Positions 7,600-60,504 of a DNA stretch of 64,000 nucleotides are shown one piece after another. Source of the stretch: Macrostomum lignano. Its lineage: Eukaryota. Each line of letters opens with the position of its first letter. The first letter of the stretch is position 1. The position numbers were made by a program, and so were the translations under genes. The DNA lies in NCBI GenBank assembly GCA_002269645.1, contig NIVC01002061.1, positions 77,838-141,837 of the forward strand. Reading direction: 5' to 3'. Below the pieces are notes generated by a model. It saw only the letters and a program-made list of their open reading frames with translations. It did no database searches and had not been told where the DNA came from.

Positions 7600-8290
7600 A
7601 GTTGTGCACTGCTGATGCTGAAGCATTGATGATGCTGCAGACATTATATACATACATGTAACAGATCCCCAGCTGGACAGGACGCAAATGGTCGGAAGAG
7701 ATCAGACGCTAATTTACGCCGGTCTAAAACTGGACCAAAATCTGTAGACGGCCGGCACCAATAGCGATCGCAGAGTAGACAATGAGGGTATTGCAGCAGG
7801 GAAGATACATGTTGAGTGTAGCTACCACACCATATATATACGTATATATGATCGAGTAGTGTCCCAGGGTCCTCTGGTTCTGGTCCTTCTCCAAGAAGCT
7901 ACGAGTGAATCGTCACAGTATATCTATCCCCTAGAATTTAACTGTTACTTTAAGATTGAGTGGACTTTCACGTAAAGCACGGAATGTCCCAGTAGCGTAC
8001 AGCGTTGCGGCAAGACACATGATGTTACTACTCTGATGGTCCTGAGTCCTGTAGCGGTGTTTCCGCTGAATCGCGGTTGTCCGGTTTTTGTTACCCCAAC
8101 TCTCCTTTATATACTAGGATTGGCTATAAATGTCCATCTACGACTCGACACTGGCAAGTCTGATCAATTTTTTAACAAGAATGTAAAAATATTTTCTCCC
8201 TGCAATTGGCGAATAAATAATCTTTCCTTCTCTGCTCTCCGACAATTGGCTCCTTAGATTATTCGTCTGCACAAGCTGGTTCCTTCGTCC
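7600..8290 (+). repeat. Dispersed repeat family copy (homologous to 41390-41660)
   Basis: Two shared blocks: CCCCAGCTG.A..GGACGC...GTCGG.AG.GATCAGACGCT..TTTACGCCGGTC (7660-7750 vs 41440-41525) and ATTTTCTCCC...ACAATTGGCTCCTTA (8190-8257 vs 41585-41655). Confidence 0.7.
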
Positions 8291-11065
8291 AGCCAATAAG
8301 CATTCGCTTCACAATTATATGGTCCGACCGGGCGTAGCTTGGTTGGGTGTTAAACCAGTGGGGCGTGGCTCTTGTGCGTTGGTGCGGGGGTGGTGGGCCG
8401 GGCCTTGGTCACGTGCCCGCGGCCTGGGTGGCGTTTATTTAATACGGTGCGGGCTGTCGCTGACCCGCCAAGCGCTTATTGATTTTTTTCTCGCTTTTAA
8501 GTCTCCAAGGTTTTTATTTGGCTTTTAAGTCCGGTAAATTAAAGTTCATAAATACGCTCGAATACTCGTACAATAGGGCCAAGCTCGAACCTGCGCCTCT
8601 CGTGCCAACTGCCTTGACTTCGTCTCACGACCCTTTCTATTCGACCCTTTTCTGAGAGAGTGCAGGGGCAGTTCACAAAGCGTTGTGGGCGCCAAACTTT
8701 TGGGCTATATTTAGCTACACTAGTCAAAAATAAGGGTGAGGAGCAGAGTGTTAAAACAAATTGGCTTCTTATAAGGTACTCGTATTTTGACGGGAAATTT
8801 AACTGAATGAACCTCATCAGTTGCAAATAAAGGAAACGAACATTGAGAATAATGCAGGAGCAAGAGGAAAAGAGAGTAGAGAGTTATTTATCATGATGGG
8901 TTTCGACCTTCGGGCTCCTTGTTAGGGAAGCCTTCGGGCCTCAGGCTCAGAAATAAATCAATTAGAGACCTGGCCCCCCACTCCTGTCAGATGGTCAGCC
9001 CCATGGTAGCTACCATGGTACCATGGTAGCAGTCTAGGTCCTATAGCTAAGAGAGGGACAGCGAGAGACGAGCAGGGAGAATTTTGAAAGTAGAAATTAG
9101 CTAATCCGCAGATCAACTAACTTGCTGCCACCAGCCCGTGCGCCCTGGCTCACCACACCGGGACTCTCGAAATCGGGCTTCCGACTAGAAGGGGCTTTGC
9201 ACTTACCTGCCAACTAGTGTCTTTTTGCTGTCAATCTCGAAGTCATAGCCGATGATAAGGGACACTGCTGGGACTAGATCGCGTTGGCCATGCAGGTACA
9301 GAGGGGACTTGTGCAGGGGATTCTTGCGGTGGCGAGTCTATGGGGTAGCTACATGTACTATTACATTGCTAAATACGAAGATATGTACTTTTAGCCTTCA
9401 ACGCGCCAACTAGCCTCTCATAGCGCTGATGATAGGCTAACTCGAACTTCAGAGACCGCATGATTCATTTACCCGAGCCGCTTGGCTACCCTAGAGTGCA
9501 CAAAGTACATCTCTGGCGCCGATTCTGCACTTCTGGCAGTTTTGCTCACTGATTTGTTAGATTGGTCGACTGAGAACTGCCTTGCCATTGGTCCACTGTG
9601 ACCGGCGCCTACTAGCTTAGCTACTCATCTGAGCCATCGGCGAACAAAGAAATAAAGCCGACAAAGATAACTGTTAGATTTAACCTTCTCCTTAGTTCAC
9701 TTCACACTTTAGATTGAATTGGAGTCTTAGACTACTAGCAGTATTATTGAATGATTCCTGCCTCAGCAACAGCACTACTGAACAAAATGAGCAAAAGTGT
9801 GCGCCTAATTCAGCTACTGCAACAGGGGACAGAAAAGGGATCACCCAATCAAGCAAGTCTAGGTGGCCTCTCACCCAACCAATCAGAAACTCAACAGCCG
9901 GAGACCAGGTATTCCACAGTGACCGAATCGGCTCGATGCTCTGCAGCTGTAGACTCGGGATGATGCTGTCACAATCTTCGCTGTTAGCTAGCAGGTGATG
10001 CTCTTAACTGGATGTTCGCTGCTGTCGACCGGGGGACTCGTCCTTGATGATGATGGGGGAAGTTGCAATCCGGGGATCAAGAAACGACGGTCGTGCTCCG
10101 GGAACCAGAAGTTGCGCGCTGGGCCCGAGCCAAAGTAAGAAGAAGTTGCGTCCGAGCGGGCCAAAAACACCGGTTTAAATAGCCGCCAACTGGACCGCAG
10201 TTTGTTATAACGGAACACGACGATTCTGATTGGCTGAGCCGTTTTGTTAAAATGAGCGCCGAATTTTATGATTGGCTAAGCTCGTTGCTACCCAGAATCA
10301 CGTGACCGAGAGATCCTATCAGTTCCCACAGGGTCGTAAAAAGATGACAGGTGCGGCCATAAATCACTCAAAATCGCAACAAAATGATTTATGACTTTTC
10401 GCGTAGGATTGACAGAAATTAATGAAAAAATATACATTAGAAAGCTCTTATTAAATAGAAAGTGAAGATAATGAAGAGAAATCGCTAATCGCTAATCCCA
10501 AGGTACTTTTAGGGGTAAAACGCATAGCTGTCAAAGCTGTCACACGCTTGAGTGAATCCGAACAATAGGCTCTGACCTCATAAATCTTGATGGCCTGTCA
10601 AAATGATGAGAAAAAAGCTACCGCCCGCATCCTCTCAGACCATCTGGCGCCCGTCTCAACACTGAGTGAGGCGCAGGTGGCTGTCAGACCAACTTCGGAA
10701 GCGATGATTTACGACCCAAAAAGCTACGCCTATGTTATTATGACTACTAGTATGGCCAGACATTATATCTAGTATAGATTCTATGACAATTCGCAGAAAA
10801 AGGATAAAAATGCCCACTGCCCACTGTTAGTAGGCAAGTAAGTTTAGAGCCCATGTGCTAGCGCGGGATTTGGGAAAAAAGTGCGTCCTCATCAATCATA
10901 CTAGAAAAAGGGGAAATCTTAAAGGCAGAGAATGACTTTCTACCAAATCTGCTATAATTAGTAGCAATAAATGAAAATGAAAACCCGCCAATAAAAGAGA
11001 AGATATTTAAAATTAAGCTGTACATGTAGTTGGAAGGTGATGTACACAAATTTGCATAGCAGATA

Positions 11066-17800: not shown

Positions 17801-20800
17801 TCAATCCAGCAAAAAGCGCAGACTGTCGATTGCCTCCTTCCTGGAAACCAGTTCCCAGGTCGGAGGCAACTTTTTGATTCCTTTTCGATACTTAGCCTGC
17901 AGCTTGTCCTTAAATGTCCATGAGAACCAGTGCCAGAACTTTGCCGAATCGTTTCCTGCGTCGGGATCAATCTCCCACTCTGGAAAGTACTTTTTGTACT
18001 CTTTGTAAGGGTGATAGACTTCTTGTTTGCTGTCGGCACGACAGTTTGACGTCTGCTTACCCCTTCGCTTGCAAAAACCACATGAAAATCTGCCATCACT
18101 ACTAATTTCAAATTCACAATTATTGAATGCTAGCTGATCAATTCTAATATAATAAACACCATCCACTCCAGGTGGTCTGTGCTGAATGCAGCAATGCGGG
18201 CTGCCGTCTTTTTCGTGGTGATTTTCCTGAGACTTGCAGCACGGCTCGCTACAGAAAGGGCAGCGTTCTTTGCAGCCCCAAAGGCTCTGAAGCACATCGG
18301 AGTAGAGAGTGGAGTCTCCGTGCCATCTGACTGTTGACTCGTTCATACTAGCGAAGTGCTTTATTAGTGTGGATTTGAGGTCGCCCAGGCCGCCTAAAAG
18401 ATGTTTCAGCATGTCTTCCACTTTTACATTAGATTCGTAAGTGCAAACATGATATAAGTTTTTAGGAAGCACGGCGAGCTCTTTTTCGGCTTCTTTACAG
18501 AATTCATCGATCCAAACTTTCAGTGAGGTGCACCGAGTTGCCGCCACTCTTGCCGCTTCTTCAGTCACCGCAATTGTCGGCGCAATGAGCGATGACTCGA
18601 GATGGCCTGAAAATACACTGTTGCCATCCGATGTTCTCTGAAACAGCTGACGGTTAATGAACTGCGTCAGCCATTTCAGAGCAGTAGTATGGGAATCTCT
18701 CACGTATTCAAGGATCGATTCTGCGTCACGTCTCTGTGCCATGTCCGTTAGCATGCGAACAATGAGCTGGTACTTTGTCCTGCCGATCTCGTTCCGCATT
18801 ACTCCTCTCAATTTACCTGCCATTCTTTCCTGGAAAGCCTGTTTCATCACCGAGTACAGATGGTCACGAATAAAATCAGCCACCATCTTGGCTTCGGCCT
18901 GTCGGCGGACAATGTTTTCAAATAAGTTCAACATCTTTGTCTTCGTATCGGCCAGCTTTGTTTTGATGCTGTTGGCTTCGTAAAAATTCCGCGTAATCTG
19001 CTCAAATGTTGGGTATGCAGTGCGTAGGGCGAGGACCACTACCTTGATTTCGAATGCACGCGTTGTGCGGATATGATTGCTCGATAGTCTGAGAGAGGAG
19101 TTTACTGCATCACACACGTATTTTTGTATTCGATTAACGTGAACCTTAGAAACTCCTGTCAAGCCCCCCCTCATATCCTCGCAAAGACTTTGGACGGCCT
19201 TGAGAATGTCAGATACAAAGTCTACCACTAGCTTGCGTTCTTCTTTTTCTGGCTTACTGGAAACATAACTTTTTAATTGTTTGATTTTCAAACGTTCTGG
19301 TATGATGAGCTGAACAGTGTCTCCTTTAGGAAACAGTATTTCAGGTAAGCTATCACTTCGACCCGCTGATTGTCTCTTTAATGGCGTTTGCTCCAAAAAT
19401 ATGCCCACATATTTTTTTTCATTATAATAGATCTCTCGCAGTTGATCTACCACTTGACTTTCGATACTTCCGAAGTCGACTGTTCTCTCAGGTGGCAGCT
19501 GCTGCGCGAACTCCTGCCACAGAGCTTCGAATTCCTGCAGAATTTTTTCTGTTGAGCTGCTCTTTAGCGTGGGTGCAAGTTCGGTGGCCCGTCTTATGAT
19601 CTTAGACTCCCACTCCTCCGTCCGTGAACCTTGTTGAAGCTCAACTTTTTGCCCATCGCACAAGATTTGGAGTTTCTGCCGAAGTGACTGCTCAAGACTT
19701 TTGATGCAATCCCTTAAGGACACTAACTTTCGCTCCTTCCATTGTATTGTGTACTCACCGTACTGGTTTTCATAAAAAAATACGTTTAAGGACTTCAGAC
19801 CTTGCTGCTGCCAAGTTTCAAGCATAGCACGAAGCTCACTTATAGCCCTTTGCTGCACATCCGCGACAGCACTGACCGTTTCGCATTTCCTAACGGGAAT
19901 CGCTGCCGATTTATAAAGCCAGTCTTCGCTCAACTCTTCAATGTAATTTGTCACTTCGAGAAATTTGTTCTCCAGCATGTTGTAAGCCTTGAGTTCGACA
20001 CTGCTTTTAAAGCTGAACACAAAGTCCTCAGAAAGTATTGCCTTCCACAAATCATTTACTCGCTGAGAAAAGTCGCTGAATCCTAGATAGCTTTTCTGTT
20101 CTTTATCAAGAATATGCAAAAGGTGCTGCTTAATCTCCTGAACACCCATCGAGTAACCCGGATTCACTGGAGCCATGGGAGGGTCGCCTTGTAACAGATC
20201 TGACATAAAGAAAATATCCGTGTCTCTGTTGAACTGCAGAATGTCTCCGAAACGCTTCACGTCATGGAGACCTTCTCCTTCTGCAGCTTCCTTCGTCATG
20301 TGGTCGAGTTTCTGTTGTATCTTGAATGTCGCTTCCTGCATCATCTCTTTTGCTCCAGCCGCTGCTACATTCTGGTGTATGAAGATGCAGTGTCTGTGCA
20401 GATCTCGATCTTTGTTTGCCATCTTCATCCTGATGAAGGCGTGAATCGCGATCTGCAGAATCTCATTCATCTCCGCAGCGTTCTCTCCTTTGATGTTGAT
20501 GATGGTCACGTCGCCCAGTCCGATGACCAGTGTAGCCAGCTCGTTGTCATGATGATGCTTGTCCAGACCCAGCTCCGGAGCTCTCAGACCCTCGGTGTCG
20601 AGCACAGCGACATAGTCGAAAGGCATTCCCGACTCCACAGGAACTAGCTGCAGAAATGCGCCTCGAGTGCAGCGACCTGCGCTCACTGCGAACTTCAGTC
20701 CGAACATGGTGTTGAGCAGAGTGGACTTGCCTGAGCTCTGCAGACCGAGCACAGAGATCACGTAGATCTTCTTGTCACCGACCAGCTCCTGGCAGGTCTT

Positions 20801-23008
20801 GAGGATAGCAGAGATCCAGGCAGACGGGATGTTTCCAGCGTCGCCATCGAGAATCTCTAGAGGAACTCCGCACAGCAAGAGTTTGGCCATCACGCGTGGG
20901 ATCAGATTGATGTCAAGCGCTCGGAAAGTCTTTGTACTTTCTGAAGAGGCAGCTAAAATGGCCTCGTAGAATTGGCCCGCCTCTCTGAATATGTTTTCGA
21001 GGCCAATTGAAGCAAGCAGTATTTGATGGCCAAGTTCGGTGAGCTGATCATCAATTGCGGTCTGTGATGATTCATCCGCAATTTCTTTACGCTGCCGCAA
21101 TTCCTTCTGCATTTTTCTAAGCCTTGGCAAATGCTCTCTAGAAGAAGTGTCGAAGAAAGATCGAATGCACTGAAGCCAAAGCTTAACCAGAAGCTCATTG
21201 TCAGCAATCTTTGTCAGTGTGGTAAGAAACTCCTCCATAATGGGACTGAGTTGATTGCAGAGACCCATTTGCTGACGTCTGGCATTGAGACGCTGATGCT
21301 GAGCTTCCAACTTGTCTTCATCTGTTGCCTTAGAAGAGTTTTCTTTTTTGTAGTGGCGACTGTAGTCCATCCATTTTTCTTGCAAAGGAAGATGTTCTTT
21401 CCTTAAGTTCATCATTCCGCTCTTCGATACTTCCCCAAAGATGGAGCTGCAAAGCTGGCTTGCCTGAGAAACGAGAGAGCCGTCATCAAAGTCAACTTTG
21501 ATTTCTCCGATAGGTTTCTGCTCGGCGCCAACCTTTGCCAATGTCTCTGAAAGTCTTTGTTGAATTTCGCCAACTATTTCACGCTCTGGTTTTTTTTTCT
21601 TTGTGTCAACGCAGGAAAATGATTTAAGGGTACTCAACAACTCGCTGCTCAGCGGATTTGCGAGTGTCTGAGATCTGTAGAGAACCACTATCACTTCTAA
21701 TTCCTTCATTTTTGACATGCTTTGAAGCTGACTAAAGCACTCGGGCTGTGAAAGGGTGCTGACGTCCACAAAGACAACCACAACTTCGGAAGCTGAAGTT
21801 AAAACATGAGATTTATCTGCAAAATCCAGCAAGTCACCTCTGAGGTTTGTTGCCAAGAAGGCTCGAGTCAGTTTAATGTTTCTGGACGGCAGAAACACGG
21901 TGGCCTCAACGAGTCCGTTGCTGCAGACTCTGCGCGCGTGGCCGTTGGTGCAGTCTCTGTGGAAGAACGTCTCATGACTGCTGCCATTGAGTAGGGAGTT
22001 CAGCAACTTGGACTTCGACACAGGCAAATCTCCGATCCTCACAAATGATACCACCGGGAAATGATAGTCTGACATCAGGCTGGTCTCTATGTACTGGCCA
22101 TTTTCGTTTATGAACTGAACTACAATGTCTTTCAGGCTCCAGCTGCTCATGACCAGAGGCTTGTCAACAGTTGAATAGATGAATGGGAAAGCCAGCTTGC
22201 AAGCAAACAGAGCTTTGCAGAGCATTTGTTGCACCTCTTTGTCACAGCAGAGGTAGCTCGCAAGCAAAATATCTATCGGGTTCAGCTCATTCTCAGAGCT
22301 GCCTTCTTCATCGTCCTCGAGGTTTAAAAGTGACATTTCATCTGATGCCGTCGTCTCTGGAACCAAATTTCTTCCCTGTGCGTCGCAGCTGAGGAGTGCG
22401 CGGATGACTTGCCAGGCAACGGAGTTTTCCTTCAAATTTTTGCGCTCGTCCTGGCTTCTTTTGACGAAAAGAACGTCCTTGCGCGGGATTCTCTCTGGAT
22501 AATAAGACTCCAGCTCGAGACGTTCAACAGTTTCTTGAACTGATCCAAATTTTATTGGCTTTCTCGGTTCTGCAACTCCTGAGGTCGTTGGCTGTGGGTT
22601 GACAGTTGGTTCATCTGGCATCGAGCCTTGTCTTTTTGAATGTGTAGGAAATGGTGCTGGTGTTTCAAGTCTTGGCATTGGTCTTGGGGATAGCGATGGT
22701 TGAGTAGTCGACGATGGACCCGAGTCTTTCTGTACAATTTTATGCAGCTTATTAAAGAGGTCCGTCAAGGCTTGGTTGCTTTCTTCATCTCCCGCAAGCC
22801 TCCTCACCAGCGCATAGTCGATAGCTTCTAATGAGTCCAAGGTAGCAATATTTTTCTCTCTTAAGTACAGCTCTATAATGTTCAGAAACTCAGTGGATGC
22901 AAATTCGGGATGCTTTTCCGAAAGCATTTCCTTGGCGTTCAATGCAGCACTTGATAGACCGACTTCTTCTACATCTAAAATTGTCAAATGGAAATTTCTG
23001 ATTGGCAT
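17801..23008 (-). CDS. GVIN1-like: Very large inducible GTPase (VLIG/GVIN family), GVIN-A; main exon probably starts at the phase-1 acceptor 22974
   Basis: 1735-codon ORF with G1 GLQSSGKSTLLN, G2 RCT, G3 DTEG, HQNV, URGCP/GVIN-type FFHRDC...NGLVE region and C-terminal CPFCSEPC/HCCIQHRP. Two candidate acceptors: TTTTATACAG|c-ATG (23010) and TTGACAATTTTAG|AT (22975). Confidence 0.95.
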   Translation of the reverse strand: MPIRNFHLTILDVEEVGLSSAALNAKEMLSEKHPEFASTEFLNIIELYLREKNIATLDSLEAIDYALVRRLAGDEESNQALTDLFNKLHKIVQKDSGPSSTTQPSLSPRPMPRLETPAPFPTHSKRQGSMPDEPTVNPQPTTSGVAEPRKPIKFGSVQETVERLELESYYPERIPRKDVLFVKRSQDERKNLKENSVAWQVIRALLSCDAQGRNLVPETTASDEMSLLNLEDDEEGSSENELNPIDILLASYLCCDKEVQQMLCKALFACKLAFPFIYSTVDKPLVMSSWSLKDIVVQFINENGQYIETSLMSDYHFPVVSFVRIGDLPVSKSKLLNSLLNGSSHETFFHRDCTNGHARRVCSNGLVEATVFLPSRNIKLTRAFLATNLRGDLLDFADKSHVLTSASEVVVVFVDVSTLSQPECFSQLQSMSKMKELEVIVVLYRSQTLANPLSSELLSTLKSFSCVDTKKKKPEREIVGEIQQRLSETLAKVGAEQKPIGEIKVDFDDGSLVSQASQLCSSIFGEVSKSGMMNLRKEHLPLQEKWMDYSRHYKKENSSKATDEDKLEAQHQRLNARRQQMGLCNQLSPIMEEFLTTLTKIADNELLVKLWLQCIRSFFDTSSREHLPRLRKMQKELRQRKEIADESSQTAIDDQLTELGHQILLASIGLENIFREAGQFYEAILAASSESTKTFRALDINLIPRVMAKLLLCGVPLEILDGDAGNIPSAWISAILKTCQELVGDKKIYVISVLGLQSSGKSTLLNTMFGLKFAVSAGRCTRGAFLQLVPVESGMPFDYVAVLDTEGLRAPELGLDKHHHDNELATLVIGLGDVTIINIKGENAAEMNEILQIAIHAFIRMKMANKDRDLHRHCIFIHQNVAAAGAKEMMQEATFKIQQKLDHMTKEAAEGEGLHDVKRFGDILQFNRDTDIFFMSDLLQGDPPMAPVNPGYSMGVQEIKQHLLHILDKEQKSYLGFSDFSQRVNDLWKAILSEDFVFSFKSSVELKAYNMLENKFLEVTNYIEELSEDWLYKSAAIPVRKCETVSAVADVQQRAISELRAMLETWQQQGLKSLNVFFYENQYGEYTIQWKERKLVSLRDCIKSLEQSLRQKLQILCDGQKVELQQGSRTEEWESKIIRRATELAPTLKSSSTEKILQEFEALWQEFAQQLPPERTVDFGSIESQVVDQLREIYYNEKKYVGIFLEQTPLKRQSAGRSDSLPEILFPKGDTVQLIIPERLKIKQLKSYVSSKPEKEERKLVVDFVSDILKAVQSLCEDMRGGLTGVSKVHVNRIQKYVCDAVNSSLRLSSNHIRTTRAFEIKVVVLALRTAYPTFEQITRNFYEANSIKTKLADTKTKMLNLFENIVRRQAEAKMVADFIRDHLYSVMKQAFQERMAGKLRGVMRNEIGRTKYQLIVRMLTDMAQRRDAESILEYVRDSHTTALKWLTQFINRQLFQRTSDGNSVFSGHLESSLIAPTIAVTEEAARVAATRCTSLKVWIDEFCKEAEKELAVLPKNLYHVCTYESNVKVEDMLKHLLGGLGDLKSTLIKHFASMNESTVRWHGDSTLYSDVLQSLWGCKERCPFCSEPCCKSQENHHEKDGSPHCCIQHRPPGVDGVYYIRIDQLAFNNCEFEISSDGRFSCGFCKRRGKQTSNCRADSKQEVYHPYKEYKKYFPEWEIDPDAGNDSAKFWHWFSWTFKDKLQAKYRKGIKKLPPTWELVSRKEAIDSLRFLLD

Positions 23009-23364
23009 GCTGTATAAAAGTTAATTACGTAACTGTGAGTAATTTATTTTTATGAATTATACAATCCCAGACTTGGATTTGGCATGCAGAAAGGTCCAGC
23101 AGTCCACTCTACCATAGACGAAACTCGGGTAGCTCAGTCTTGGCTAGTCGCGTCTTACTTTGGTATGCTTAAAAATTTTGACTATCTAGACTGGTCTAGG
23201 CAAAAACCTAGCCTACTACTGAGCTGACTTGGTCAATGCTTTTTGATAGTTTTCTAGTGACTGCTACTGCCACTGAAAGATCGCTCGTTGCATTAGCTTG
23301 GATTTAGTCGAGACCGACCTTGAGAGAGTGACTCCTATGCTTTAACTATGCTTGACACTCTCGT

Positions 23365-23775
23365 ATCTTGGTACGGGTAGCTTTCAGCAGAACCTGGCTG
23401 CCCTTGGAGGGATCAACCAGAGCACTCTGTCTCGATGCTACTGGGAAGTGGCATTGAATCACATGATTGAGTTTACGACTGGATAATATCAGCTTTCCAG
23501 GCTCAGGCGTCGAGCTGGAACGCATCTCAATGGGGTTTTACCAAATTTGTCCACTGCCCCATGTAATCGGTAATATTTCTATTCAATTTCTGGACGAATT
23601 TGTCAACTAAAAAATCTACGATTCGATTAATTCCCGATCTTGAGGTCAAGTGCGCGGTGGATTGGGTCAGTTCATGACTCGAAGGATTTTCTGCAACAGT
23701 GATCTATCTCTACAGTTTTCTTCTAGATACGCAATGGAGCGGCTGGCTGTCTTCTTGATTCTTGCTATCTACTTA
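23365..23775 (+). mobile_element. Harbinger/PIF transposase (HARBI1-like) remnant
   Basis: Degenerate translation LGTGSFQQNLAALGGINQSTLSRC ... GTHL ... FYSI ... ARWIGSVHDS ... CLLDSCY matches ATGSFQ, SQ.SVSR, DGTHI, WPGS.HD and LLGDSGY motifs of Harbinger DDE nucleases. Confidence 0.85.
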
Positions 23776-24035
23776 TCTGCATGTCTCTACAAGAAATGAA
23801 TCCCTTAAAAATGGCGCCTAAGTGGGGCGGACTAGCCTAGACTATTCTAGCCTAGATTAATATCGATAGCTAGTCTCGACTAGGTTTGTGCACTTTAAGA
23901 CCTGAACTATCCAGTCCGGACTAGCTAGTCTGGACCACAGATTCTAATATACACTAGGTGGGCCACTCTCTTAAAAAGCTGTCTCTTTTGCTTACTGTCT
24001 ATGATATAGAATCTGTGGTCTGGGCTACGCTTTCT

Positions 24036-24458
24036 CATGGATGAAGGAATAGAAAGGATCGCTCATCTGAAAGCGAGTCTATGGCCAAAACCTCCTAAAA
24101 ATTGGGATATTCCCCCCATGAATTTAATGGAATTGATGGAATTTAATAATAGTCCCCCCTAAGCTCCTACTGACTGAAGCTTCTACGCGAGGGAAATTCC
24201 AAAGTCACGATTAACGTTAGACATTTTTTGCTTCCTCTGGGCCACGACCATTCTATTCTTACCTCCATGGCCATGACGGCATAAGGAAAAGAAATTAGCA
24301 TTCCACCGCGTACAAGCCTCTGCCATTAAGAATTTAGTTGGGACTATTATTAAATTACATCAGCCAATGAAATTCATGGGGGGACATCCCCATTTTTAGG
24401 AGGTTTTAGCCATAGACTCGCTTTCAGATGAGCGATCCTTTCGATTCCTTCATCCATG
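24036..24458. mobile_element. 423-bp MITE, P-element-like (long TIRs, 8-bp TSD)
   Basis: About 90-bp imperfect TIRs beginning CATGGATGAAGGAAT; perfect 8-bp TSD CGCTTTCT at 24028-24035 and 24459-24466. Confidence 0.9.
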
Positions 24459-24769
24459 CGCTTTCTGCGTACGTCCTCACGAGTGCGCGTTGCTATGCAC
24501 TCGTGAGTACACGAGTGTCTATGGAATTATTGCAAAATCAAGCCGTGCATCTATCAAATTGCCGACGGGTATAGCCCATCGTGGAGAAGACCATAGACAA
24601 AGTTCAATTAGCGTGAATTATTTCGCAATCGTCTACCTCCAAAACCATATACAAAATCTGCCGTTGTCCCATGAATCTTATATTTTTAGTAGCCTTAATA
24701 ATGATTTTGAAGCGTTGAATAATGAGCGTACAGCATGACACAATGACAATACAGAACAACATAATCTAC

Positions 24770-24919
24770 CGGCTTGAAAGTTGACCCTCTTAACGTCGGC
24801 CGCCGTCGTCCTCTTGAGTCCAATTTTGTTTCCAAACTTAGCGCTGTAGCACCTCTCGCAGAAGATGTCGCCCTGCGCTACGAACAATTTTGTCACTTGA
24901 AGCTGTGCGTTGCATTCTC
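24770..24919 (-). CDS. LIM-domain exon 2 (second zinc finger), phase 1-1
   Basis: Acceptor CCTTTCACAG|; reads (G)ECNAQLQVTKLFVAQGDIFCERCYSAKFGNKIGLKRTTAADVKRVNFQA, i.e. CRP/CRIP-like C..L.......G.IFC..CY..KFG; candidate donor GCCG|GTAGAT (weak, 3' boundary less certain). Confidence 0.85.
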
Positions 24920-25125
24920 CTGTGAAAGGAAACACGATAATAGCGGTTTTACCCACAGATAAAATAAAAACAATCATATTTTAAAGATTGAGACTTTTTA
25001 AAACAGTGCTGCATATCGACTATACCGGTTTAAGTAAAGTGTGCGGTATGATTCGTTCCGATGCCAAATATATTTCTGCCAATTGAAAGCTCGCCAGTCA
25101 GACTGCCAAGAGCTGGTTCACTTAC

Positions 25126-25249
25126 CGTTACCGCACCGCAGGCAGCGTTTGTGCCAGCTCTTGCCGGCTGCGCACTGAGCCTCAGCAGGGAACACCTGTT
25201 CGCTGCACCGAGGGCACCCGAGGCACCGGGGTGGATGCCCTTCTTCCAT
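25126..25249 (-). CDS. LIM-domain exon 1 (start codon and first zinc finger)
   Basis: Acceptor AAAACAG|GCAC-ATG; reads MEEGHPPRCLGCPRCSEQVFPAEAQCAAGKSWHKRCLRCGN(G); strong donor G|GTAAGT; splices in frame across a 206-nt intron to exon 2 to complete a C2-H-C-C-C-C2 LIM pattern. Confidence 0.9.
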
Positions 25250-26282
25250 GTGCCTGTTTTGACTTTTTAATGCGATTAAAAAGCATGCATTTCATGGTTT
25301 TGAGGTACTTTCGGTTCGGTTAAATTTAACAAAAATGAACCTCGTTTTCTAATTGTTAATAAATCTATATGCATAACGAATAAAATGTAAACTTTGCCTT
25401 ACTAAATTAAAGGTATACAATAAAATAAATAAACAAAATGAACACATTGAAACACTTGACTAAGGACTTCTTTTGAAATTAGATCATAATTTAGACACTA
25501 AAAATTGTAGCAGCAATTAAGAAAGCGGTATATAGTGCATATACGAGCGTACAGAAGGCTATCATTGTCATTGGATTAAAAGTTTGTAGTGCAATTACTG
25601 TACTCGTATAATCATGTCCTAATTGTCCGTAAAACAAGTATAATTAACAAATTAATAAATATTTGTTAAAGTAGATGATCAAGATTATGAAAATACTTCA
25701 GAGCTTTTATCAATGCTAAATTTAGTTTAAATTGCAGCTATATGACTGTGAACGGAAGTTCGCTGGATTTTTAATAGAAAAATAAAAGACGATATAGCTA
25801 CTAGAAGGAATACTTCTGATAACTACGCAGCTACGTACAGTATAAGAATCAACAAGCTACTAAACATGAGTAAGTAGAAAAATTTCTCTTTAGTTTACCT
25901 GTGTCTTATTAGTACATGCTTTAAGTTTGAAAGATAGTTCGTAAACTGACATGAGAATATAAAAGCTTGCTCAGTAGTTGGCATTTGAACTAAAAATGAT
26001 ATTGTAGCTCCGCCATACTATATAGAGTGCAGGGCGGGCATATTCAGTAAAAAGCAGAGCGTTAAGAAGATGCTGAATACATAACTCGATATCGTTCAGG
26101 TCCGCTTTTATAGTCTAAAATTTAATTACTTCAATTGGAAAACAGCGAATAGAAAAAAGTCAGCATGGCCTCTAGGGCCTATCTAGGGTCCATTTTACAA
26201 GTTTCAAATAACAAGTGAAAATTGCCAATATTCCGAGAACTTTTACACAGCTCTTCGCTTTTTCCATGAACAGGCACGCACC

Positions 26283-26665
26283 CGGGGGTGTTTTATAAAG
26301 CTAAGCTTGATCTTAAGTGCCAACTTACACATTAACTTAGGGGTAAGGGGGTCATACTATAAAGCTGTCGTAGCGTAAGTTCGATCGTACGTCGGAACTT
26401 TTACACTGCGGAGAATCTAAGAACCATCTTATCTTACGATGGCTTTATAGAACGGGCCCGACATGTTTTATAAAGATAAATGTAAGTCTTAGCTGGGAAC
26501 CAACTTAGGTACGACCTAAGATAAGATTGAACTTATGGTCATTGGGCCCGTTTTATAAAGCCATCGTAAGATAAGATCGTTCTTCATCGTAAGATAAGAT
26601 AAAATCTTCATGAAAATACTATTAATTTGTCAAGGCACTTTCGGATTTCTCATGAAATGGACCCC
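26283..26665. mobile_element. Cluster of short nested Harbinger-like MITEs
   Basis: Inverted pair ATCTTATCTTACGATGGCTTTATAGAACGGGCCC (about 26427-26459) / GGGCCCGTTTTATAAAGCCATCGTAAGATAAGAT (about 26544-26578); further related termini (GG..TGTTTTATAAAG, CATGAAATGGACCCC). Confidence 0.65.
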
Positions 26666-26808
26666 AAAATTTATTAAAAGTCCCTTACTCGGCGCAAAAA
26701 TTAGCTATTGATATGAAAAACAGCCTAATCATTAAAAGATTAAACTTGAAATAAAAAATAAAAGTGCGTGTTAGCTACTGTAGGGCTTTTTAATGACCAA
26801 TGTAAATT

Positions 26809-29800
26809 TTAAATAAGACCTTGAAGACTTTCAATGGCAGCACACTTTGAAACCAATCGCCATTCTGGCGGAATCCGATCCATCCTGATTCCTTTGGTTC
26901 GTTCCAGCTCCTCCTTGAAGCGCCACACGAACCATTTCCAAAACACTGCGTCCGAATTTCTCTCGTCTGGGGGGATATCCCAGTCTGGGAAGTACCTTCG
27001 GTAAGCAGAATAGCGGTGTTGGTAGTTTGGATCGAAATTGCGCTGGACGCAGTTCTCCGATGGCTTAGTGCTATATTGGCACGCTGAGCAGGAAAACGTG
27101 ATTCTTCGAGGTCCAGTGTCAAGATGCAGCCAGGATCCGCAAGTTTGAGCCATAAACTCCCTTGTTGCCACCCAGTGCCAGCCGGAGACTCCCTGTGGTC
27201 TGTGCTGCACGCAGTGATGCGGACTGCCATCAATGTCAAAATGGTGCAACAAAGACTTGCAGCACGGCTCTCTGCAGAATGGGCATTGCTCCTTGCAGCC
27301 CCAAATTTTGCTGAGCACAGATGAGCACAAATCTGTTTCACCGCAAACAACTTCTTTAACATTCCGGACATTTGAATAGTGTTGCATCAGACGACTTTTC
27401 AGATTGCTTATTTCAGAGACTACAGTGCGAACAACTTCCTCCAAATTTGCTGATTTATAACTTTTCAGCTGAACCAGATCATTTGAACCAAACTGAATGT
27501 CAGCTGGCATGAGGGAAGGAAGCTTTTCAATCCACTCTTGAAAACTTTTCGATTGAGCTGCAGAATCTTGTATCGATCTTTTTGCACTTTCCAGCTGCGG
27601 GTCAATCAGTGACTTAACTATTGTTATAAGTTCAATGCCAGCCTGGCTACTGTGCCCTAGAAATGTAGCATTAATGTACTGATCAAGCCAGTAGAAAGCA
27701 CTTTCATATGGTACAGCGATGTATTTAGCCAGTGAGTCGAAGTCCTCTCTATCTGCCATGTCTTTCAGCATGCACACAATCAGATGGTATTTTGTCCTCC
27801 CCAAATCATTCAAGATCCTGCTTCGTAGGTCAGCTCCGACTTTCCAATCAGTCAACCGAATCACCAAAGCGCGCAGATGGCCCATGAAATACTCAGCCAC
27901 GATTTCACTGTCGCATTTTCCTTGGACTGTGCTCTCAAACAGTCTCCACATTCGTTCTTTTGAGTCTGCGAGTTTTGCTTTCTGACCGCTTTTATCAACA
28001 AACCTTCTGTCCATTGCGACAAGGTGTGGAAAGGCGAATCTGAATGCAATGACTGTCAGTCTTATTTCCAACTCGTTAGTGAGTCCAATCCACTGCTCTC
28101 TAAACTTCTCTGACGCTAGTTTTTGCAAACCAACACGAATCATTTGATGAATTGTTGGGATGTCTGAGCCCTTCTTTGCAAGTTCAACAACTGCTTTAAC
28201 TAGTTCTTTGCTTTCGGTCAGTACTGTGACAGACCTGTTCTTTTTTGCATCTGCTGCGTTTGATAACGGTTTAGTTCCGCATTTCGAGTCGCCTTCTATC
28301 GATGCGTAAAGGGTAGATCGATTTGGCACAAGACTATGTTCCACTACATTTTCGATTGACTCATCAGGTTTCAATGAAATTGGGGATTCCCGAAGAACAT
28401 CGTCGAGGGTGCGACCCTCGCTTGAGTAAAATTGCTTTAGGTGGTCTACTATCATTTTTTCTATCACAAGTCGTTTATTTTTTGGCTGAGATGCAAACTG
28501 ACTTTCTAATTGCTTCCAAAGTTTGTCAAACTCTTCGCGAATTTGTTTAGCTGAAACGTTCTTTTGTCTTTTAGTCAATTCATTCCCTCTTGCCACCACC
28601 ATCTGTTCCCATTTCTGCTGCTGAAAACCCTGCTCTAACTCCTCTCTCTGCTCGCTGCACATCGCTTCCATTTTTCTGTGTGTCTCAAGTTCAAGGTTGC
28701 GAAAGCTGTGTTTGAGATTCTCCAACGTTTTTTCTTGGAAATGCAGCACGTACTCTCGGTATGGGCTTTCGTTGAAAAACCTTTTTAAAATGTCCGACGT
28801 GTCCTTAAATTCTTTCATGAGAAATTCTGTCAGATTCGCTTTGGATCTTGCTAAAGTCTCAGCAATCAACTCGCATGTTGAACACACTCGAATGGCATTG
28901 GCTACGGTACTCTGCAGCCATTCCTCTAAGCGGTCTTCAACATCGCCCATTGTTTTTAGGAGTCTTTTTTCAAGTCTGATATATGCTTTCCGCTCAATGC
29001 TATTCCTAAAACTGAACACAAAGTCCTCAGACAGTATTGCCTTCCACAAATCATTTACTCGATGAGAAAAGTCGCTGAATCCCAGATAGCTCTTCTGTTC
29101 TCGATCAAAAATGTGCAAAAGGTGCTGCTTAACCTCCTGAACACCCATCGAGTAGCCTGGATTCACTGGAGCCATGGGAGGGTCGCCCTTTAACAGATCT
29201 GATATGAAGAAAATATCCGTGTCTCTGTTGAACTGCAGAATGTCTCCGAAACGCTTCACGTCATTGAGACCTTCTCCCAATGCAGTTTCTTTCGTCATGT
29301 CGTCAAGGGTTTGATGCATTTTGAATGTCGCTTCCTGCATCATCTCTTTTGCTCCAGCCGCTGCTACATTTTGATGAGCAAAAATGCAACGCCGTTTTAT
29401 GTTAATCATTCTGTTTGCCATCTTCATCCTGATGAAAGCGTGAATCGCAATCTGTAGGATATCCTTCATCTCTGCAGCGTTCTCTCCTTTGATGTTGATG
29501 ATGGTCACGTCTCCAAGTCCGATGACCAGTGTAGCCAGCTCGTTGTCATGGTGATGCTTGTCTAGACCCAGCTCGGGAGCTCTAAGACCCTCGGTGTCGA
29601 GCACAGCGACATAGTCGAACGGCATTCCCGACTCCACCGGAACCAGCTGCAGAAATGCGCCTCGAGTGCAGCGACCCGCACTCACTGCGAACTTCAGTCC
29701 GAACATGGTGTTGAGCAGAGTGGACTTGCCTGAGCTCTGCAGACCGAGCACGGAGATCACGTAGATCTTCTTGTCACCGACCAGCTCATGGCAGCTCTTG

Positions 29801-32312
29801 AGGATGGCAGAGATCCAGGCAGACGGGATGTTTCCAGCGTCGCCATCGAGAATCTCTAGAGGAACTCCTAGCATCAGAAGATTTGCAAAGCACTTTGGTA
29901 AGTTGTTTACTAAAGGCCTTTTATCGGTTAAAATGTCGATTTCGGCTTCTTGAAGGGCTTCAAAAAGTTGACCCTCTTCTCTAAAAAGATGTTCCAGTCC
30001 TACGGAGCAGCTCCGCAGTTTTTTTTCGAGCTTTTTTAGCTGCTGTTCAGTTCTTAGTCTCTCTTGCATTTGCTTTGTTCCCAGTTTGTCTACCAGCTCT
30101 CTTTTGCGTTCTAACAAAGCCGGGAAGGTTTTCCTTGACTTCTCATCAAGCTTCAGCTTTATGCATTGTACATACAGCTTTGCTAGTAAGAAATTGTCGT
30201 TGCAATCACTGGCTGCGTTCAATACTTTTGCAAACGTTAGGGCAAGTGTCTTTGATGCCTTCAGTATTTCGATTTGCTTATTTCGAATGCCAGCTCTTCT
30301 TAACGAGCTGACCTCAATTTCTTCAGGAGATTTAATATTGTACTCCTTTCTCAGTAGTTGACTGTATTCTAGCCACAGAGCCGTCAGGGGCAAGCATTCT
30401 TGTGCCAAGTTCGTCTGGTCTCCCGCGTCAATTTTAATCAGCAGTGCGACGGCACTTTTCATAGTTCCACCTGGGAAACTATCGAAATCGGACTGCTGGA
30501 GTTGCTGCGCGAACGGAATTTCTCTATTTAAATTTTCATTAACCAGCTTTTGAGCGAGCTCGCGACTTAGGTCACTGAGAAGCTCCCGTTCCGCTTTTGG
30601 TCTCCTTCCACTAAAAGCTGTTACTGTTGGCAACGATGCAACAATTTCTTTTTCCTCTTCGGTGTATTCTTGAGACTTGCTTTTAGTAGATCTGACCATT
30701 TCTTTGAACACAACGAGAATGATTTCAGCTTTTTCTCTCAGATTCCGAAGACTTTGCAAGCACTCTTGCCCTCTAAGTATTTCCAACTCGACAAAAACTA
30801 CAATGACATGGGAGACTTCGGCCAATAGGCGAGCTTGCTCATCGAACTCTAAAACGTTTCCTCGAAGATTTGCTGTCAAGAATGGCCGGGCCATGCCGGC
30901 CGAAGTGCTTGTCTTCGACGGCAGAAACACTGTGGCCTCAACCAGACCGTTGCTGCAAAGCCTTCGAGTTTGTCCGCCGAAGCAGTCTCTGTGAAAGAAT
31001 GTCTCATGACTGCTGCCATTGATAAGAGAGTTCAGCAGCTTGGACTTGGACACAGGCAGCTCTCCGATCCTCACAAAGGACACCACTGGAAGCGGGTAAT
31101 CTGAAACTAGACTGGTCTCGACGTACTGACCGTTCGGATCTCGAAATTGGAGAATGATGTCTCTCAGGCTCCAGTTGCTCATCACTAATGAGTCCTTCTC
31201 ATCTCGGTAGATAAGTGGAAAAGCCAACTTGCAGGCAAACAGAGTCTTGCACAGGATTTGCTGCACCTCCTGGTCGCAGCAGAGGTAGCAGCAGAGAAGA
31301 GCATCGATTGGGTTGACTCCTTCCTCCGAATTATCCTCTTCTTCCTCTTGCAAACTAATTTTTGATTGCAAAAGGATGCTGGAATCCGGCCTAACAGCTC
31401 GTCCGTCATAATTAAAAAGCTGTCTTAGTAGATACCAGGACGTTTGAGTTGGCTCCAGGCTCTCTGGTGCCTCAATGTTAGATGCTACGACTTTAATTAT
31501 TTGCGTGAAAGGTATGGACATTGGAAACCAGTCACTCATTCCTATTTTAGTCACCATTTCTCTCAAACCAGAGTTTTCCGTGTAAGTTTCTTGAGTCTGC
31601 CTATCTTTTTGTGCTTCAATTTCGTGCGAGTCAACTTCAAGAGATTTCTTATGAGTTGTCTCGACATCTTCAGCCTCACTTTCCGATTCGGACCTCTCAG
31701 AGCGCTGCGCTTCGTCATCATTGCCTGGCTCAGTAGCTGGAGAGTCAGTAGCCGTGTTGGAGTGTCCAGCTTGGTTTTCTTGGCTGTCGAGTTCATCGCA
31801 CTGCATGGCAGCTCCCTTTTCGTCATCAGTCTCTTGATCCGAACAGTTGTTAGGAACTCTCACACAGGCTTCGGGTTGAATCTGGATGTCTCCTGACTGT
31901 AGAGTCAACAGGTACTCCAAGAGAGCATTAATATCCACTGAGCAGCATTTTCCGGGTTCCTGGTTATGCATCTTCTTTCCTGGCAAATTTCCTTCTATAT
32001 CTTTTCTGGTGCTTTCCTTTTTTGTCTGATATTTCTGAACTTTCGCTATAGCATCTCTGTTTTCAACAAAAAGAGATTTTATTTCATCCAGTTGTCTTAA
32101 AACACGGTCTGCCATTTCTTTGTCCTCTTGGCTGTCTTGTTGCTGAGCGAGACTCTCGTGGTCGTTTTTAAAGGTCAGATGAAAAACGCTGGGTACGGTT
32201 TTCACGGACATGCAGTACTTTTGAAGTTTGTTTTTCCACTTTTCTGCGTCTGCCTCAACCAGAAACTGACGAAGAGCGACTTCAATGGCCCTGTTCATTG
32301 ATGGCGGCTCAT
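26809..32312 (-). CDS. GVIN1-like: Very large inducible GTPase GVIN-B, main coding exon
   Basis: Uninterrupted ORF with the same G1/G2/G3 motifs, FFHRDC...NGLVE and C-terminal CPFCREPC; polypyrimidine acceptor TTTTTCATTCCAG|AT at 32313-32314 (phase 1). In-exon ATG at 32298 is an alternative start. Confidence 0.95.
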
Positions 32313-36229: not shown

Positions 36230-36289
36230 CTTCGTCACGCCCTTCGGCCATTTCGCTGCTCGCTCAGCCACCTGCAGCGCTTTCCAGGC
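36230..36289 (-). CDS. Start-codon mini-exon of GVIN-B (ATG at 36251, MAEGRDE, phase 1)
   Basis: Strong acceptor TTTTACTTTTTTGCACAG| and donor GAAG|GTGAGT; ATG in good context (GAAATGG) with in-frame upstream TGA; G|AT joins to 32312 in frame (MAEGRDE-D-EPPSMNR), giving 5526 nt / 1841 aa. Confidence 0.75.
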
Positions 36290-44008: not shown

Positions 44009-45480
44009 TCAGTCCTTGTAGCAAACAGGCTGCCGAGGGCGAAACTCGTACGGCTCCCGGTGGCAAATGTTTCCGGGCTCCTGGCGCTCCAGGTCGAGCC
44101 GCGGGTCGTCTTCCATGGCAACCACCGGGTCAGTCAGCGCACCATCGGGTTCAGGTGTCTCAAGCCGCTTAGGAGAGTCCGGCCGGCCGGTCCACTGATT
44201 TGAGAGCGCCAGCCGCAGGCCACCGCCAGGCTGATTGGCCGGAGTGACAAGCGCCGTGTTCAGGCCGTGCTGCACCACGAACTTGGCTGGCACCGGAGGA
44301 GTTCCAGGTCGCATCCTCAGCCAGATTGGATCGCCAGCTTGCTCCGTCATTGTCAGCGGGTGTCGAAGCCGACGGCCCCACATGAGGATGTCTGGAGAGG
44401 CTGCGCGATTGCCGCTTGGCCGGCTGGTCCTTATCGTCAGCAACAGCTTTTGCAGAAAATGGTCGAACGGCACCACCTTAGTCCACGCTCTGAGACCATC
44501 CTTAATGATTCGCACCAGTCTCTCAGCTTGACCATTCGAGGCGGGATGATACGGCGGGGTGTGCAGTTCACGACAACCAATGCTGCGCAGCCACTGCGAG
44601 ACCTTCTCCGACTTAAACTCCGGCGCATTGTCCGACACCAGCGTCTGAGGCACTCCATTCCTCGCAAAAACCGCTCTTAGAACACGCAGTACACTTTCTG
44701 CAGATCGATCAGGCACCTGAATCGCCTCAGGCCACCCTGAATAGGAGTCGGACAACAGCAGGAGCAGCCCAGCACCAGAGATCTCACAGTGGTCCATGTG
44801 AACTCGCGCCCATGGCTCACTCTCGGCTGGCCAGATGTCGATTTTCCGCTGAAGCACCGGTCGAGTTTCTGAGCACTGCCGACAGCGCTCTACAAAAGTC
44901 CGCACCTCGCGATCCAGGCCAGGCCACCAGAATTCCTTGGAGATGTGCGCCTTGGTGTTGTCAGCACTCGGGTGTACTTCGTCATGGGCCGCCTCCAGGA
45001 TGCGCCTGCGGAGAATGGGTGGCGGCACAATTCTGGTTCCATGGATCACCAGGCCATCTTCGACTGACAGAGCCTCACGACACGCCTTGTACGGTCTCTC
45101 CACCTGCGACACCTGGCCCCACCTGCCGGTTCTGATTCTCTGCCGGAGCCGTGTCAACAGCGAACACCTCCGAGTTCCTTCACGTAACTCTTGCAAGGTC
45201 ACCAGAGCCCCTTCAGTGACGACCTCAGACTCCAGCTGGTGAATTAAATCATTCTGTGCATCTTGCTCGGCAAAGCTCAAGCGTGACAAAGCATCAGCAT
45301 CCGTCATCAGCCTCCCAGGCACGTACTCGACCACGTAATCGAAAGCCGACAGTCTCAAAGCCCAGCGCATTAGTCTTGCTGACACCGTTTTGGGGAGGTT
45401 TTTGCTCGGATTGAAAATATACTTTAGCGGCTCATGGTCGGTCTGGAGAGTAAACCTCTTGCCTAGCAGCATCTTGCAGA
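44009..45480 (-). pseudogene. Gypsy RNase H C-terminal remnant plus integrase (out of frame with RT)
   Basis: LLGKRFTLQTDHEPL...RLMRWALRL (RNase H tail); HHCC zinc finger (H..VH...WWPGL...C..C); DDE core VHMDH / VSDNAPEF / QAERLV. Confidence 0.92.
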
Positions 45481-47589: not shown

Positions 47590-47596
47590 GCATGCA

Positions 47597-47614
47597 ATCC
47601 TGCTTGCGACGCCA
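47597..47614 (-). promoter_or_regulatory. Primer binding site, probably tRNA-Ser
   Basis: TGGCGTCGCAAGCAGGAT 3 nt after the 5' LTR; complement ATCCTGCTTGCGACGCCA has T-stem CCTGC, 7-nt acceptor strand, G discriminator and CCA. tRNA identity is inference. Confidence 0.75.
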
Positions 47615-47617
47615 AAA

Positions 47618-47888
47618 TGTTGGAAATGACAAGCTAAGGCGAGCAATTGCTATGAGACGAGAATACGATAGCTCTGAGCCAATGCTCCGTGCGAAACTAT
47701 TTATTATTAACGATAAAGCACGAACCCGCGACAACCCCCCAACCCAGGACTAAAACTCACCGCACTGCACATCAGAGCACGATGACAATAATAACTTGAT
47801 ACGTACACTCAGACTGAACAAAAGTACAAGCACCAGTGAAATAAGCAATCAAATAATAAACAGTGCGAAGCCCCGCCCAAGCCTAACA
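47618..47888 (-). repeat. 5' LTR
   Basis: 271 bp, differs from the 3' LTR at two C/T sites (TATCAAC/TATTAAC, CATTAG/CATCAG). Confidence 0.97.
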
Positions 47889-50285: not shown

Positions 50286-51110
50286 ATGCAAGCGCAAAGC
50301 TTGCAGTCCAAGGCGCAGATTCGAGAGCTACTGCGCCAGTTCGCCCCGGATCTAGACTCGTCTGAGTGGGCAGGTACTCTCTTTGGGCATCTAAAAAGGC
50401 ATAAGATCAATGAGCTGTCACTGCTGTCTCCCGAGTCCGACTACAGCACTCTCGAAGAGAATGCAGAGACAGAGGAAGAAGCCAGAGCGTTAATTGCTTT
50501 TCTAGAAGCCATGCGTACCAGTGCTGGGGAACGGCAAGCGGGCGCCAGCCAGGTAGATTCTGCAATTCCAAGCGGAAAAACTCCTTCAGCGCCACCGGTG
50601 CAAACAGATTTTATTCACTGGAATCCCCAAGCAAACCAGCCATACTGGCCCACCGGTATGCACGGCTATCACCCAAATATGCCGATGGGCCCGCCGTTTC
50701 ACCAGCCATTTCCAATGGACTGGCAACGTTTCAACTTTCCAGCTCAACAGCCAGCACCTGCAGGAAAAAATGAGGGCGAATCAACTGGACAGCAGGTCCC
50801 TGTGGGTCAGCAGTTCTACCACCTAGGCCACCTAGGGACTATGCGACAGCATGGCCAACCAACTGGACAGCAGGTTCCTGTGGGTCAGCAGTTCTACCAC
50901 CAAGGCCAGCTAGGGACTATGCGACAGCATGGCCAACCAACTGGACCGCAGGTTCCTGCTGTTCCACTTTCTTCCACAATGCCGCTACCATTTTCTGGAC
51001 ATCCAGACAATCATCACTACATGCATCCACAGTTGAACTACTTTGGCCAGCAGCCTTACTTGGAATCGCAGTTCCACGGTCAAATGAATCATCAAATGCA
51101 GCAGAGTCAA

Positions 51111-51145
<35 letters not shown>

Positions 51146-59958: not shown

Positions 59959-60504
59959 TCACTTCTTGCCACCGCGCCACCGCCTGCCAGTTCCCGGCGG
60001 CCAGTTCATGGTCTGCCCGGCAAACACGTGCATGTGCAAATGTGGCACAGCCTGGAGTGCATCATCTCCATTATTCAGCACCATCCGGTATCCGTGCTCA
60101 ACACCTCTCTGCTTAGCAACTCGCCTAGCAACCATGAACAGGTGGCCCAACAATTGTTCGTCGCAATCCTGAGCCTCTTCAAGCGTGGCGAGCTGCTTCT
60201 TCGGCACCACCAGAAACTGGATCGGCACCACCTGGTTGAGTCCCAGGAAAGCGATGGCCTGCTCGTCCTCGTACAGGATGGTGGCCGGCGCCTTGCGCTG
60301 GATGATTCGCGTAAAAATCGACGGTCGCCTGCTCGCCAGCTCGTTTGATAAGGCGCAACGATCGCCGCGTCGGTCGGTGTAGCGAGATGACGAGGCGCTG
60401 ATGAAGGAGGCTGCAAGGCCGAGTAGAAGCAGCAGGCAGAGTCCCGCAGACAAACAGACGCTGTGCCGGTGTAGCACTCGGTAGTATATGTACGAGAACT
60501 GCAT
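59959..60504 (-). CDS. HINT: Histidine triad nucleotide-binding protein (HINT family), intronless, with hydrophobic N-terminal leader
   Basis: SIFTRIIQRKAPATILYEDEQAIAF...FLVVPKK...LLGHL...GYRMVLNNG...VPHLHMHVFAG...WPPG; HIT motif HxHxHxx intact. Confidence 0.93.
   Translation of the reverse strand: MQFSYIYYRVLHRHSVCLSAGLCLLLLLGLAASFISASSSRYTDRRGDRCALSNELASRRPSIFTRIIQRKAPATILYEDEQAIAFLGLNQVVPIQFLVVPKKQLATLEEAQDCDEQLLGHLFMVARRVAKQRGVEHGYRMVLNNGDDALQAVPHLHMHVFAGQTMNWPPGTGRRWRGGKK

Follow-up and report, generated by a model that had tools for sequence, protein, structure and literature searches.

The window analysed here, 64,000 nt of Macrostomum lignano DNA from contig NIVC01002061.1 (GCA_002269645.1), contains on its minus strand the gene GVIN-A, whose large open reading frame (ORF), judged by its profile matches, is a VLIG/URGCP-type giant GTPase. 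Two short upstream exons encoding a LIM domain are probably genuine 5' coding exons of this gene, which would give a LIM-GTPase product of about 1815 amino acids (aa). We favour this reading because the deposited protein PAA61198.1 is the translation of the three exons joined, because the neighbouring gene GVIN-B is built to the same design, because an intact LIM recurs in a second protein of this kind (P0071), and because no poly(A) signal for a LIM-only transcript was found. All positions are those of the window unless stated otherwise.

Structure of GVIN-A and its LIM exons

LIM exon 1 (25126–25249, minus strand) opens with the ATG at 25249, encodes MEEGHPPRCLGCPRCSEQVFPAEAQCAAGKSWHKRCLRCGN plus one extra base and ends at the phase-1 donor ACG|GTAAGT (minus-strand read of 25249–25126: ATG...TGC GGT AAC G|GTAAGT); it carries the first zinc finger, C-x2-C-x17-H-x2-C, followed by Cys5. 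Intron 1 (24920–25125, minus strand; 206 nt, GT..AG) separates it from LIM exon 2 (24770–24919, minus strand; 150 nt, symmetric phase 1-1; acceptor TTTCACAG|GA, weak donor GCCG|GTAGAT), which carries the second zinc finger and a CRP-like tail (CYSAKFGNKIGLKR...RVNFQA). Intron 2 (22975–24769, minus strand; 1795 nt) holds a foldback element and the large ORF's own ATG (23008–23006), and is followed by the giant GVIN-A exon (17801–22974, minus strand, stop codon included; acceptor TTTTAG|AT GTA GAA). Joined, 25249–25126, 24919–24770 and 22974–17801 give 5448 nt and 1815 codons, the sole stop being terminal. These exon coordinates, phases and frames had been proposed in an earlier note made from the letters of the sequence; checked to the base, all of them hold.

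The same structure is already present in GenBank under the name 'hypothetical protein BOX15_Mlig019641g2, partial' (PAA61198.1, here P0001; M. lignano, 1826 aa, 5'-partial), and exons that had been described as hidden are in fact annotated ones. The protein starts FLIALKSQNRHM and equals exactly the translation of 25282–25126, 24919–24770 and 22974–17801 (coding sequence span 25282–17801, 7482 bp); in a protein homology search it matched the fusion query with 100% identity across 100% of the query. The predicted splicing of the LIM exons onto GVIN-A is thereby borne out: junctions 25126|24919 and 24770|22974 are identical in PAA61198.1, as ...CLRCGNGECNAQ... and ...RVNFQADVEEVGLSS.... The 11 additional residues of the annotated 5' leader (25250–25282, minus strand), FLIALKSQNRH, precede the Met; no stop closes the frame before the transcript ends, which accounts for the flag '5'-partial', and in the genome an in-frame TGA stands at 25294–25292, four codons above the leader. 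No paper naming Mlig019641 was found by full-text search, nor were expression data for Mlig019641 or Mlig027448 found in the literature text or supplements searched.

The Mlig_3_7 annotation was built from STAR-mapped RNA-seq assembled by StringTie/TACO and from a BLAT-mapped de novo transcriptome, with transcriptional units cut by the TBONE pipeline at spliced-leader (SL) and poly(A) sites that had been mapped by experiment, and with ORFs called by TransDecoder; an ab initio predictor was not used (PMC5730564). Since such a pipeline works from transcripts only, an in-frame GT-AG junction in PAA61198.1 implies spliced transcripts, and the fusion of LIM and GVIN-A is real at the transcript level. 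The model was left uncut at 22975 although TBONE cuts at mapped SL sites.

A second phase-1 donor, overlooked in the earlier note, lies 6 nt upstream of the annotated one (TGCG|GTAACG, exon end 25132); the donor chosen there (25126) is the one used by PAA61198.1, and its GTAAGT is the downstream and stronger of the tandem pair. Use of the donor at 25132 would remove the six bases GTAACG (25126–25131, minus strand).

The ATG at 23008 lies inside intron 2, and the LIM exons are for this reason taken as ordinary 5' coding exons of GVIN-A rather than the optional addition that the earlier note had made of them. Exact look-up of the 1735-aa ORF that starts at this ATG returned no such annotated protein, which is consistent with the ATG being unused. 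Immediately before it stands an acceptor-like TATACAG|C (23006–23011, minus strand); both are conserved (9960–9968) in L001, the DNA of a paralogous locus on contig NIVC01001902.1. By its sequence this could be a candidate alternative (trans-)splice site whose use would yield a protein without LIM; at the paralogous locus, the gene model (P0002) makes no use of the equivalent site.

Intron 2 had been described as holding only debris of transposable elements, a statement that could be checked only in part. The intron contains a 423-bp foldback resembling a miniature inverted-repeat transposable element (24036–24458; outer arms 81 nt, 94% complementary). No further copies of the foldback occur in the DNA examined, and an Rfam scan of 22000–27000 gave no match. 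Reading through the exon-2 donor adds 30 codons (...NFQAGRLCCSVLSLCHAVRSLFNASKSLLRLLKI*) up to a TAA at about 24680, for a protein of about 120 aa. Neither AATAAA nor ATTAAA occurs within about 500 nt downstream of this stop, the nearest lying about 530 nt away at 24147; the statement that the LIM exons lack an obvious 3' end of their own is thus upheld, as far as a canonical poly(A) signal near the stop is concerned.

The LIM domain and the giant GTPase

The spliced 91-aa peptide matches Pfam LIM PF00412 over profile positions 1–58 of 58 (41.7 bits, E=1.4e-10; gathering cut-off 22.9 bits). All eight zinc ligands of the LIM pattern (C-x2-C-x16-23-H-x2-C-x2-C-x2-C-x16-21-C-x2-C/H/D) are present, as CPRC...H-KR-C-LR-C-GNGE-C...C-ER-C, with x4 in place of x2 between Cys5 and Cys6 in the deposited isoform. 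Its closest solved relatives are the second LIM domains of CRP1 and CRP2 (1b8t, 1ctl, 1ibi), with a best E of 4.7e-21 against 1b8t taken as the whole chain with both LIM domains, and the alignment to CRP LIM2 continues through the ...CYSAKFGNK tail, where CRP/CSRP domains have a tail of the FGPKG type. On these matches the GVIN-A LIM is a CRP-type LIM domain. A two-residue insertion relative to CRP LIM domains (CLRC-GNGE-C in place of C-x2-C-x2-C) falls exactly at the exon 1/2 junction; the donor at 25132 would give the canonical C-x2-C spacing of Cys5 and Cys6, and the PF00412 score of the peptide then rises to 48.4 bits. Both the deposited model and P0071 retain GNGE.

The giant exon encodes an N-terminal helical region, a URGCP domain, a VLIG-type G domain and a GVIN1_C region. 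In Pfam the ORF matches PF25683 (E=1.6e-112, positions 8–396 of 396) and PF25496 (E=2.5e-48), and the G domain carries the P-loop GLQSSGKS (G1, GxxxxGKS/T) and DTEG (G3, DxxG). The precomputed domains of PAA61198.1 are PF00412, PF25683 and PF25496, and likewise PF26772 (GVIN1_C). The 205 N-terminal residues after the junction matched no Pfam family. By analogy with its relatives, the product should be a nucleotide-dependent, oligomerising giant GTPase.

Related loci and alternative readings

Two further GVIN genes, GVIN-B and GVIN-C, lie in the window. In GVIN-B (minus strand) a 22-nt 5' mini-exon (36230–36251; MAEGRDE + G, phase 1, donor AAG|GTGAGT), read as ATG GCC GAA GGG CGT GAC GAA G|GTGAGT, lies 3.9 kb upstream of the giant exon (26809–32312), whose phase-1 acceptor TTCCAG|AT completes GAT (Asp); P0003 (GVIN-B, Mlig019641g1) is exactly the translation of 36251–36230 plus 32312–26809. 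In GVIN-A and GVIN-B alike the giant exon is entered in phase 1, its initial AT completing an Asp codon just ahead of the N-terminal helical region. From this shared design it follows that the acceptor at 22975 is a family feature and that ATG 23008 is intronic. Homology of the GVIN-B mini-exon (MAEGRDE) with the start of LIM exon 1 (MEEGH; MAEGH in L001) was considered and rejected: no DNA similarity between the two was detected, and we take the likeness for a coincidence. A G-domain tract of about 400 nt is 93–100% identical in DNA among GVIN-A (20869–20470), GVIN-B (29868–29470) and GVIN-C (53571–53970), compared with only 66–78% elsewhere in these genes; such a pattern is suggestive of gene conversion or of unusually strong constraint acting on synonymous sites as well.

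P0002, from the paralogous locus, is a diverged A-type copy (86% identical; coding sequence 5'-partial, without LIM) whose coding sequence starts at most 2 nt from the equivalent acceptor (L001 9998|9999) rather than at the upstream ATG, although that ATG is conserved. Upstream of P0002, at L001 7676–7792, LIM exon 1 survives as a relic, with ATG and tandem donor kept, a 12-nt in-frame deletion, Cys5 changed to Arg, and amino acid differences in 12 of the 37 aligned codons. LIM exon 2 was not detectable at L001; its expected place, 7930–9700, now holds some 1.8 kb of GC-rich DNA that bears no relation to the window intron and is probably a transposon insertion tied to the loss of exon 2. Upstream of the gene, a 46-nt block (25340–25385, minus strand, with TATAGATTTATTAAC), about 60–100 nt above the annotated transcript start, is 85% identical to L001, compared with 74–75% for the surrounding non-coding DNA and 83% for the decayed exon 1; it may be a shared promoter element.

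P0071 (UniParc UPI0007A154EE, 3625 aa) was the best match when 1.8 billion cluster representatives (50% clusters) were searched exhaustively with HMMER and the top 150 considered. The match is continuous over query residues 2–175 (77% identity, E=1.1e-78). Its LIM keeps all eight zinc ligands and the same GNGE, with substitutions only at non-ligand positions, and the first 21 residues of its exon-2 portion are identical to those of the window LIM. P0071 runs from a GVIN-B-like part (88–94% identical to B) through the intact LIM to an A-type GVIN (72–83% to A), whose N-terminus follows the LIM directly, and on to an unrelated downstream protein. UniParc entries with identifiers in this range include earlier M. 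lignano ML2 gene predictions, among which P0071 may belong. No encoding contig is on record, hence no DNA for a ratio of nonsynonymous to synonymous substitution (dN/dS), and a protein homology search with its LIM plus N-terminal segment (E<=1e-5) gave no match, probably through low-complexity swamping. P0071 and P0002 have in common an insertion of about 40 residues that GVIN-A lacks; from it we infer, as the simplest history, that the A-type copies descend from an ancestor with the order B-LIM-A and that decay of the LIM at the P0002 locus came later. By sequence, at least two loci retain the LIM-GVIN arrangement intact, and one has lost it.

Several points weigh against the LIM exons being a regular and working part of GVIN-A. 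M. lignano prefers GT[G/A]AG donors and CAG acceptors (PMC8629364); the exon-2 donor GTAGAT lacks this donor motif, as the caveat in the earlier note had rightly said, and the acceptor is TAG. The Cys5–Cys6 spacing of the deposited isoform, x4 (GNGE), is unusual for LIM domains, and an AlphaFold single-sequence model of residues 1–177 was uninformative (mean pLDDT 40). To judge from the P0002 locus, which lost it, at least one copy can do without the LIM. The P0071 model is merged, of unverified origin and probably made ab initio; it shows adjacency but does not prove splicing. The fusion, finally, may be a minor share of the isoforms.

This last point has a fuller form, in which the LIM exons are what remains of a small CRP/CRIP-like gene once separate, the principal GVIN-A mRNA is SL trans-spliced at 22975 or 23010 and translated without LIM from an internal Met, and the fusion is a rare read-through without a function of its own. 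The LIM-less P0002 model beginning at the equivalent acceptor, the decay of the LIM at that locus, the weak GTAGAT donor with its TAG acceptor, the conserved TATACAG|C before ATG 23008 and the frequency of trans-splicing (about 30–39% of M. lignano genes; PMC5730564, PMC8629364) all speak for it; yet the model is uncut at 22975, a second locus, only about 77% identical, has kept every ligand, a poly(A) signal for a stand-alone LIM mRNA was not found, and GVIN-B has a phase-1 coding 5' exon as its normal design, for which reasons we think this improbable. A neighbouring doubt concerns the domain rather than the mRNA: the fusion would be real, but the knuckle, now C-x4-C, would no longer fold or bind zinc, leaving a mere leader that supplies a start codon. 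The two-residue insertion is seen against every CRP LIM, one paralogue has lost the domain, and a seven-residue leader exon suffices for GVIN-B; retention of eight ligands in two loci about 23% diverged, with the first 21 residues of exon 2 identical, and a tandem donor that could restore canonical spacing tell against it, and we rate it as unlikely, though by a hair less so than the rare read-through. Far less credible than either is a stand-alone LIM gene, ending at the TAA near 24680 and linked to GVIN-A by a chimeric assembly of adjacent transcripts. The read-through ORF exists (...NFQAGRLCCSVLSLCHAVRSLFNASKSLLRLLKI*), and its size and tail resemble single-LIM CRIP/CRP proteins; a chimera, however, would not produce an in-frame join precisely between a GT donor and an AG acceptor, PAA61198.1 has precisely the 24770|22974 junction, AATAAA and ATTAAA are missing over the first 500 nt or so past the stop, and no LIM-only protein from the locus was found in database searches (among these a word-index search with the 89-aa LIM peptide, which through a limit of the index gave no match although PAA61198.1 is in the database).

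With the LIM exons read as 5' coding exons of GVIN-A, transcription would start near 25283 and translation at ATG 25249; two GT-AG introns of 206 nt and 1795 nt would be removed; and the product, about 1815 aa, would consist of one CRP-type LIM, a short linker and a full VLIG/URGCP giant GTPase, the LIM presumably serving as an N-terminal targeting or interaction module in the manner of CARD, PYD or Ig on vertebrate VLIGs.

Other features of the window and comparison with known systems

GVIN-C (50286–56685, plus strand) is the third VLIG gene and has a long Q/P-rich N-terminal extension; its own ATG lies 12 nt after the acceptor TTTCAG|TAACGGAAAATG. Its frame breaks near 54030–54100 and again near 54455; either this is a pseudogene, or the long-read assembly has introduced indels. 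A Ty3/gypsy-type retrotransposon (44009–47646, minus strand) has two overlapping ORFs in the order gag-protease-reverse transcriptase-RNaseH-integrase and a GC content of 54–56%, compared with about 43% elsewhere. An ORF of 181 aa with a HIT domain (59959–60504, minus strand; PF01230, E=2.9e-21; also DcpS_C) is probably, on these matches, an exon of a HINT or DcpS-like gene.

The LIM-VLIG architecture appears, from the sequences searched, to be confined to Macrostomum and undescribed in the literature. The search for LIM and VLIG-G in one protein, as suggested earlier, yielded P0071 besides PAA61198.1 and nothing more: PF00412 is absent from the other 69 VLIG homologues listed, no URGCP domain occurs in the longest LIM matches scanned (1232–2062 aa), and P0071 is the only LIM plus URGCP protein among the top 150 HMMER representatives. 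Full-text searches found no paper describing LIM with VLIG, GVIN or URGCP as an architecture, in agreement with the earlier statement that none is described.

CRP-type LIM domains associate with actin-binding partners. Cytoskeletal targeting is accordingly the most natural guess for the LIM of GVIN-A, and is speculation by analogy; that it is a working localisation module, bringing the giant GTPase to actin structures or else to some factor of host or pathogen that binds LIM domains, we regard as improbable. Flatworms are not known to have an interferon system, and if the guess were true, an interferon-less invertebrate would possess a cytoskeleton-anchored GTPase of cell-autonomous defence. 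It would also be a link between GVIN and actin independent of the block of bacterial actin tails by human GVIN1. Among the large immune GTPases, the VLIG/GVIN proteins are the least understood, and a cellular activity of human GVIN1 was shown only recently. A LIM-GVIN in a flatworm amenable to transgenesis would offer a simple test of how an N-terminal domain steers such a GTPase, with the tagged protein expressed with and without its LIM, and it would add a zinc-finger module to the domains that this fast-evolving family has taken up.

GVIN-A belongs with the VLIG/GVIN1/URGCP family (PF25683, PF25496, PF26772): it matches URGCP, URGCP_GTPase and GVIN1_C over their full length, its protein lies almost wholly in a single giant exon, and the gene is one of several copies clustered in tandem. 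GVIN-A is 30–35% identical to GVIN1-like proteins of vertebrates and cnidarians, and differs from the family in its N-terminal LIM and its flatworm source. Human GVIN1, a member of the same GTPase family that, as outlined in the preprint, coats cytosolic Burkholderia and blocks actin-tail formation (bioRxiv 10.1101/2025.03.24.645074), has no LIM domain, and its link to the flatworm protein is one of analogy only, though one that lends a cytoskeletal accessory domain some appeal. Among the LIM proteins, the likeness to CRP1 LIM2 lies in GCPRC, AGKSWHK.C.RC and the C..CY...FG.K tail. Compared with CRP/CSRP and CRIP (1b8t, 1ctl, 1ibi, 1iml), GVIN-A has only one LIM, fused to a GTPase of 1700 aa, with a degenerate glycine-rich repeat and, in the annotated isoform, the two-residue Cys5–Cys6 insertion. 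No LIM representative outside GVIN exceeds about 53% identity, and most lie at 30–45%. A parallel in arrangement is found in vertebrate VLIG/URGCP proteins with an N-terminal CARD (PF00619; P0039, P0044, P0054), PYD (PF02758; P0056) or Ig (P0052/P0053), where short 5' exons precede the giant exon, as here. Since these accretions make a small N-terminal interaction domain typical of VLIGs, the LIM of GVIN-A would be a new instance of the same habit, its domain being a CRP-type zinc-binding LIM and not a death-fold or Ig domain.

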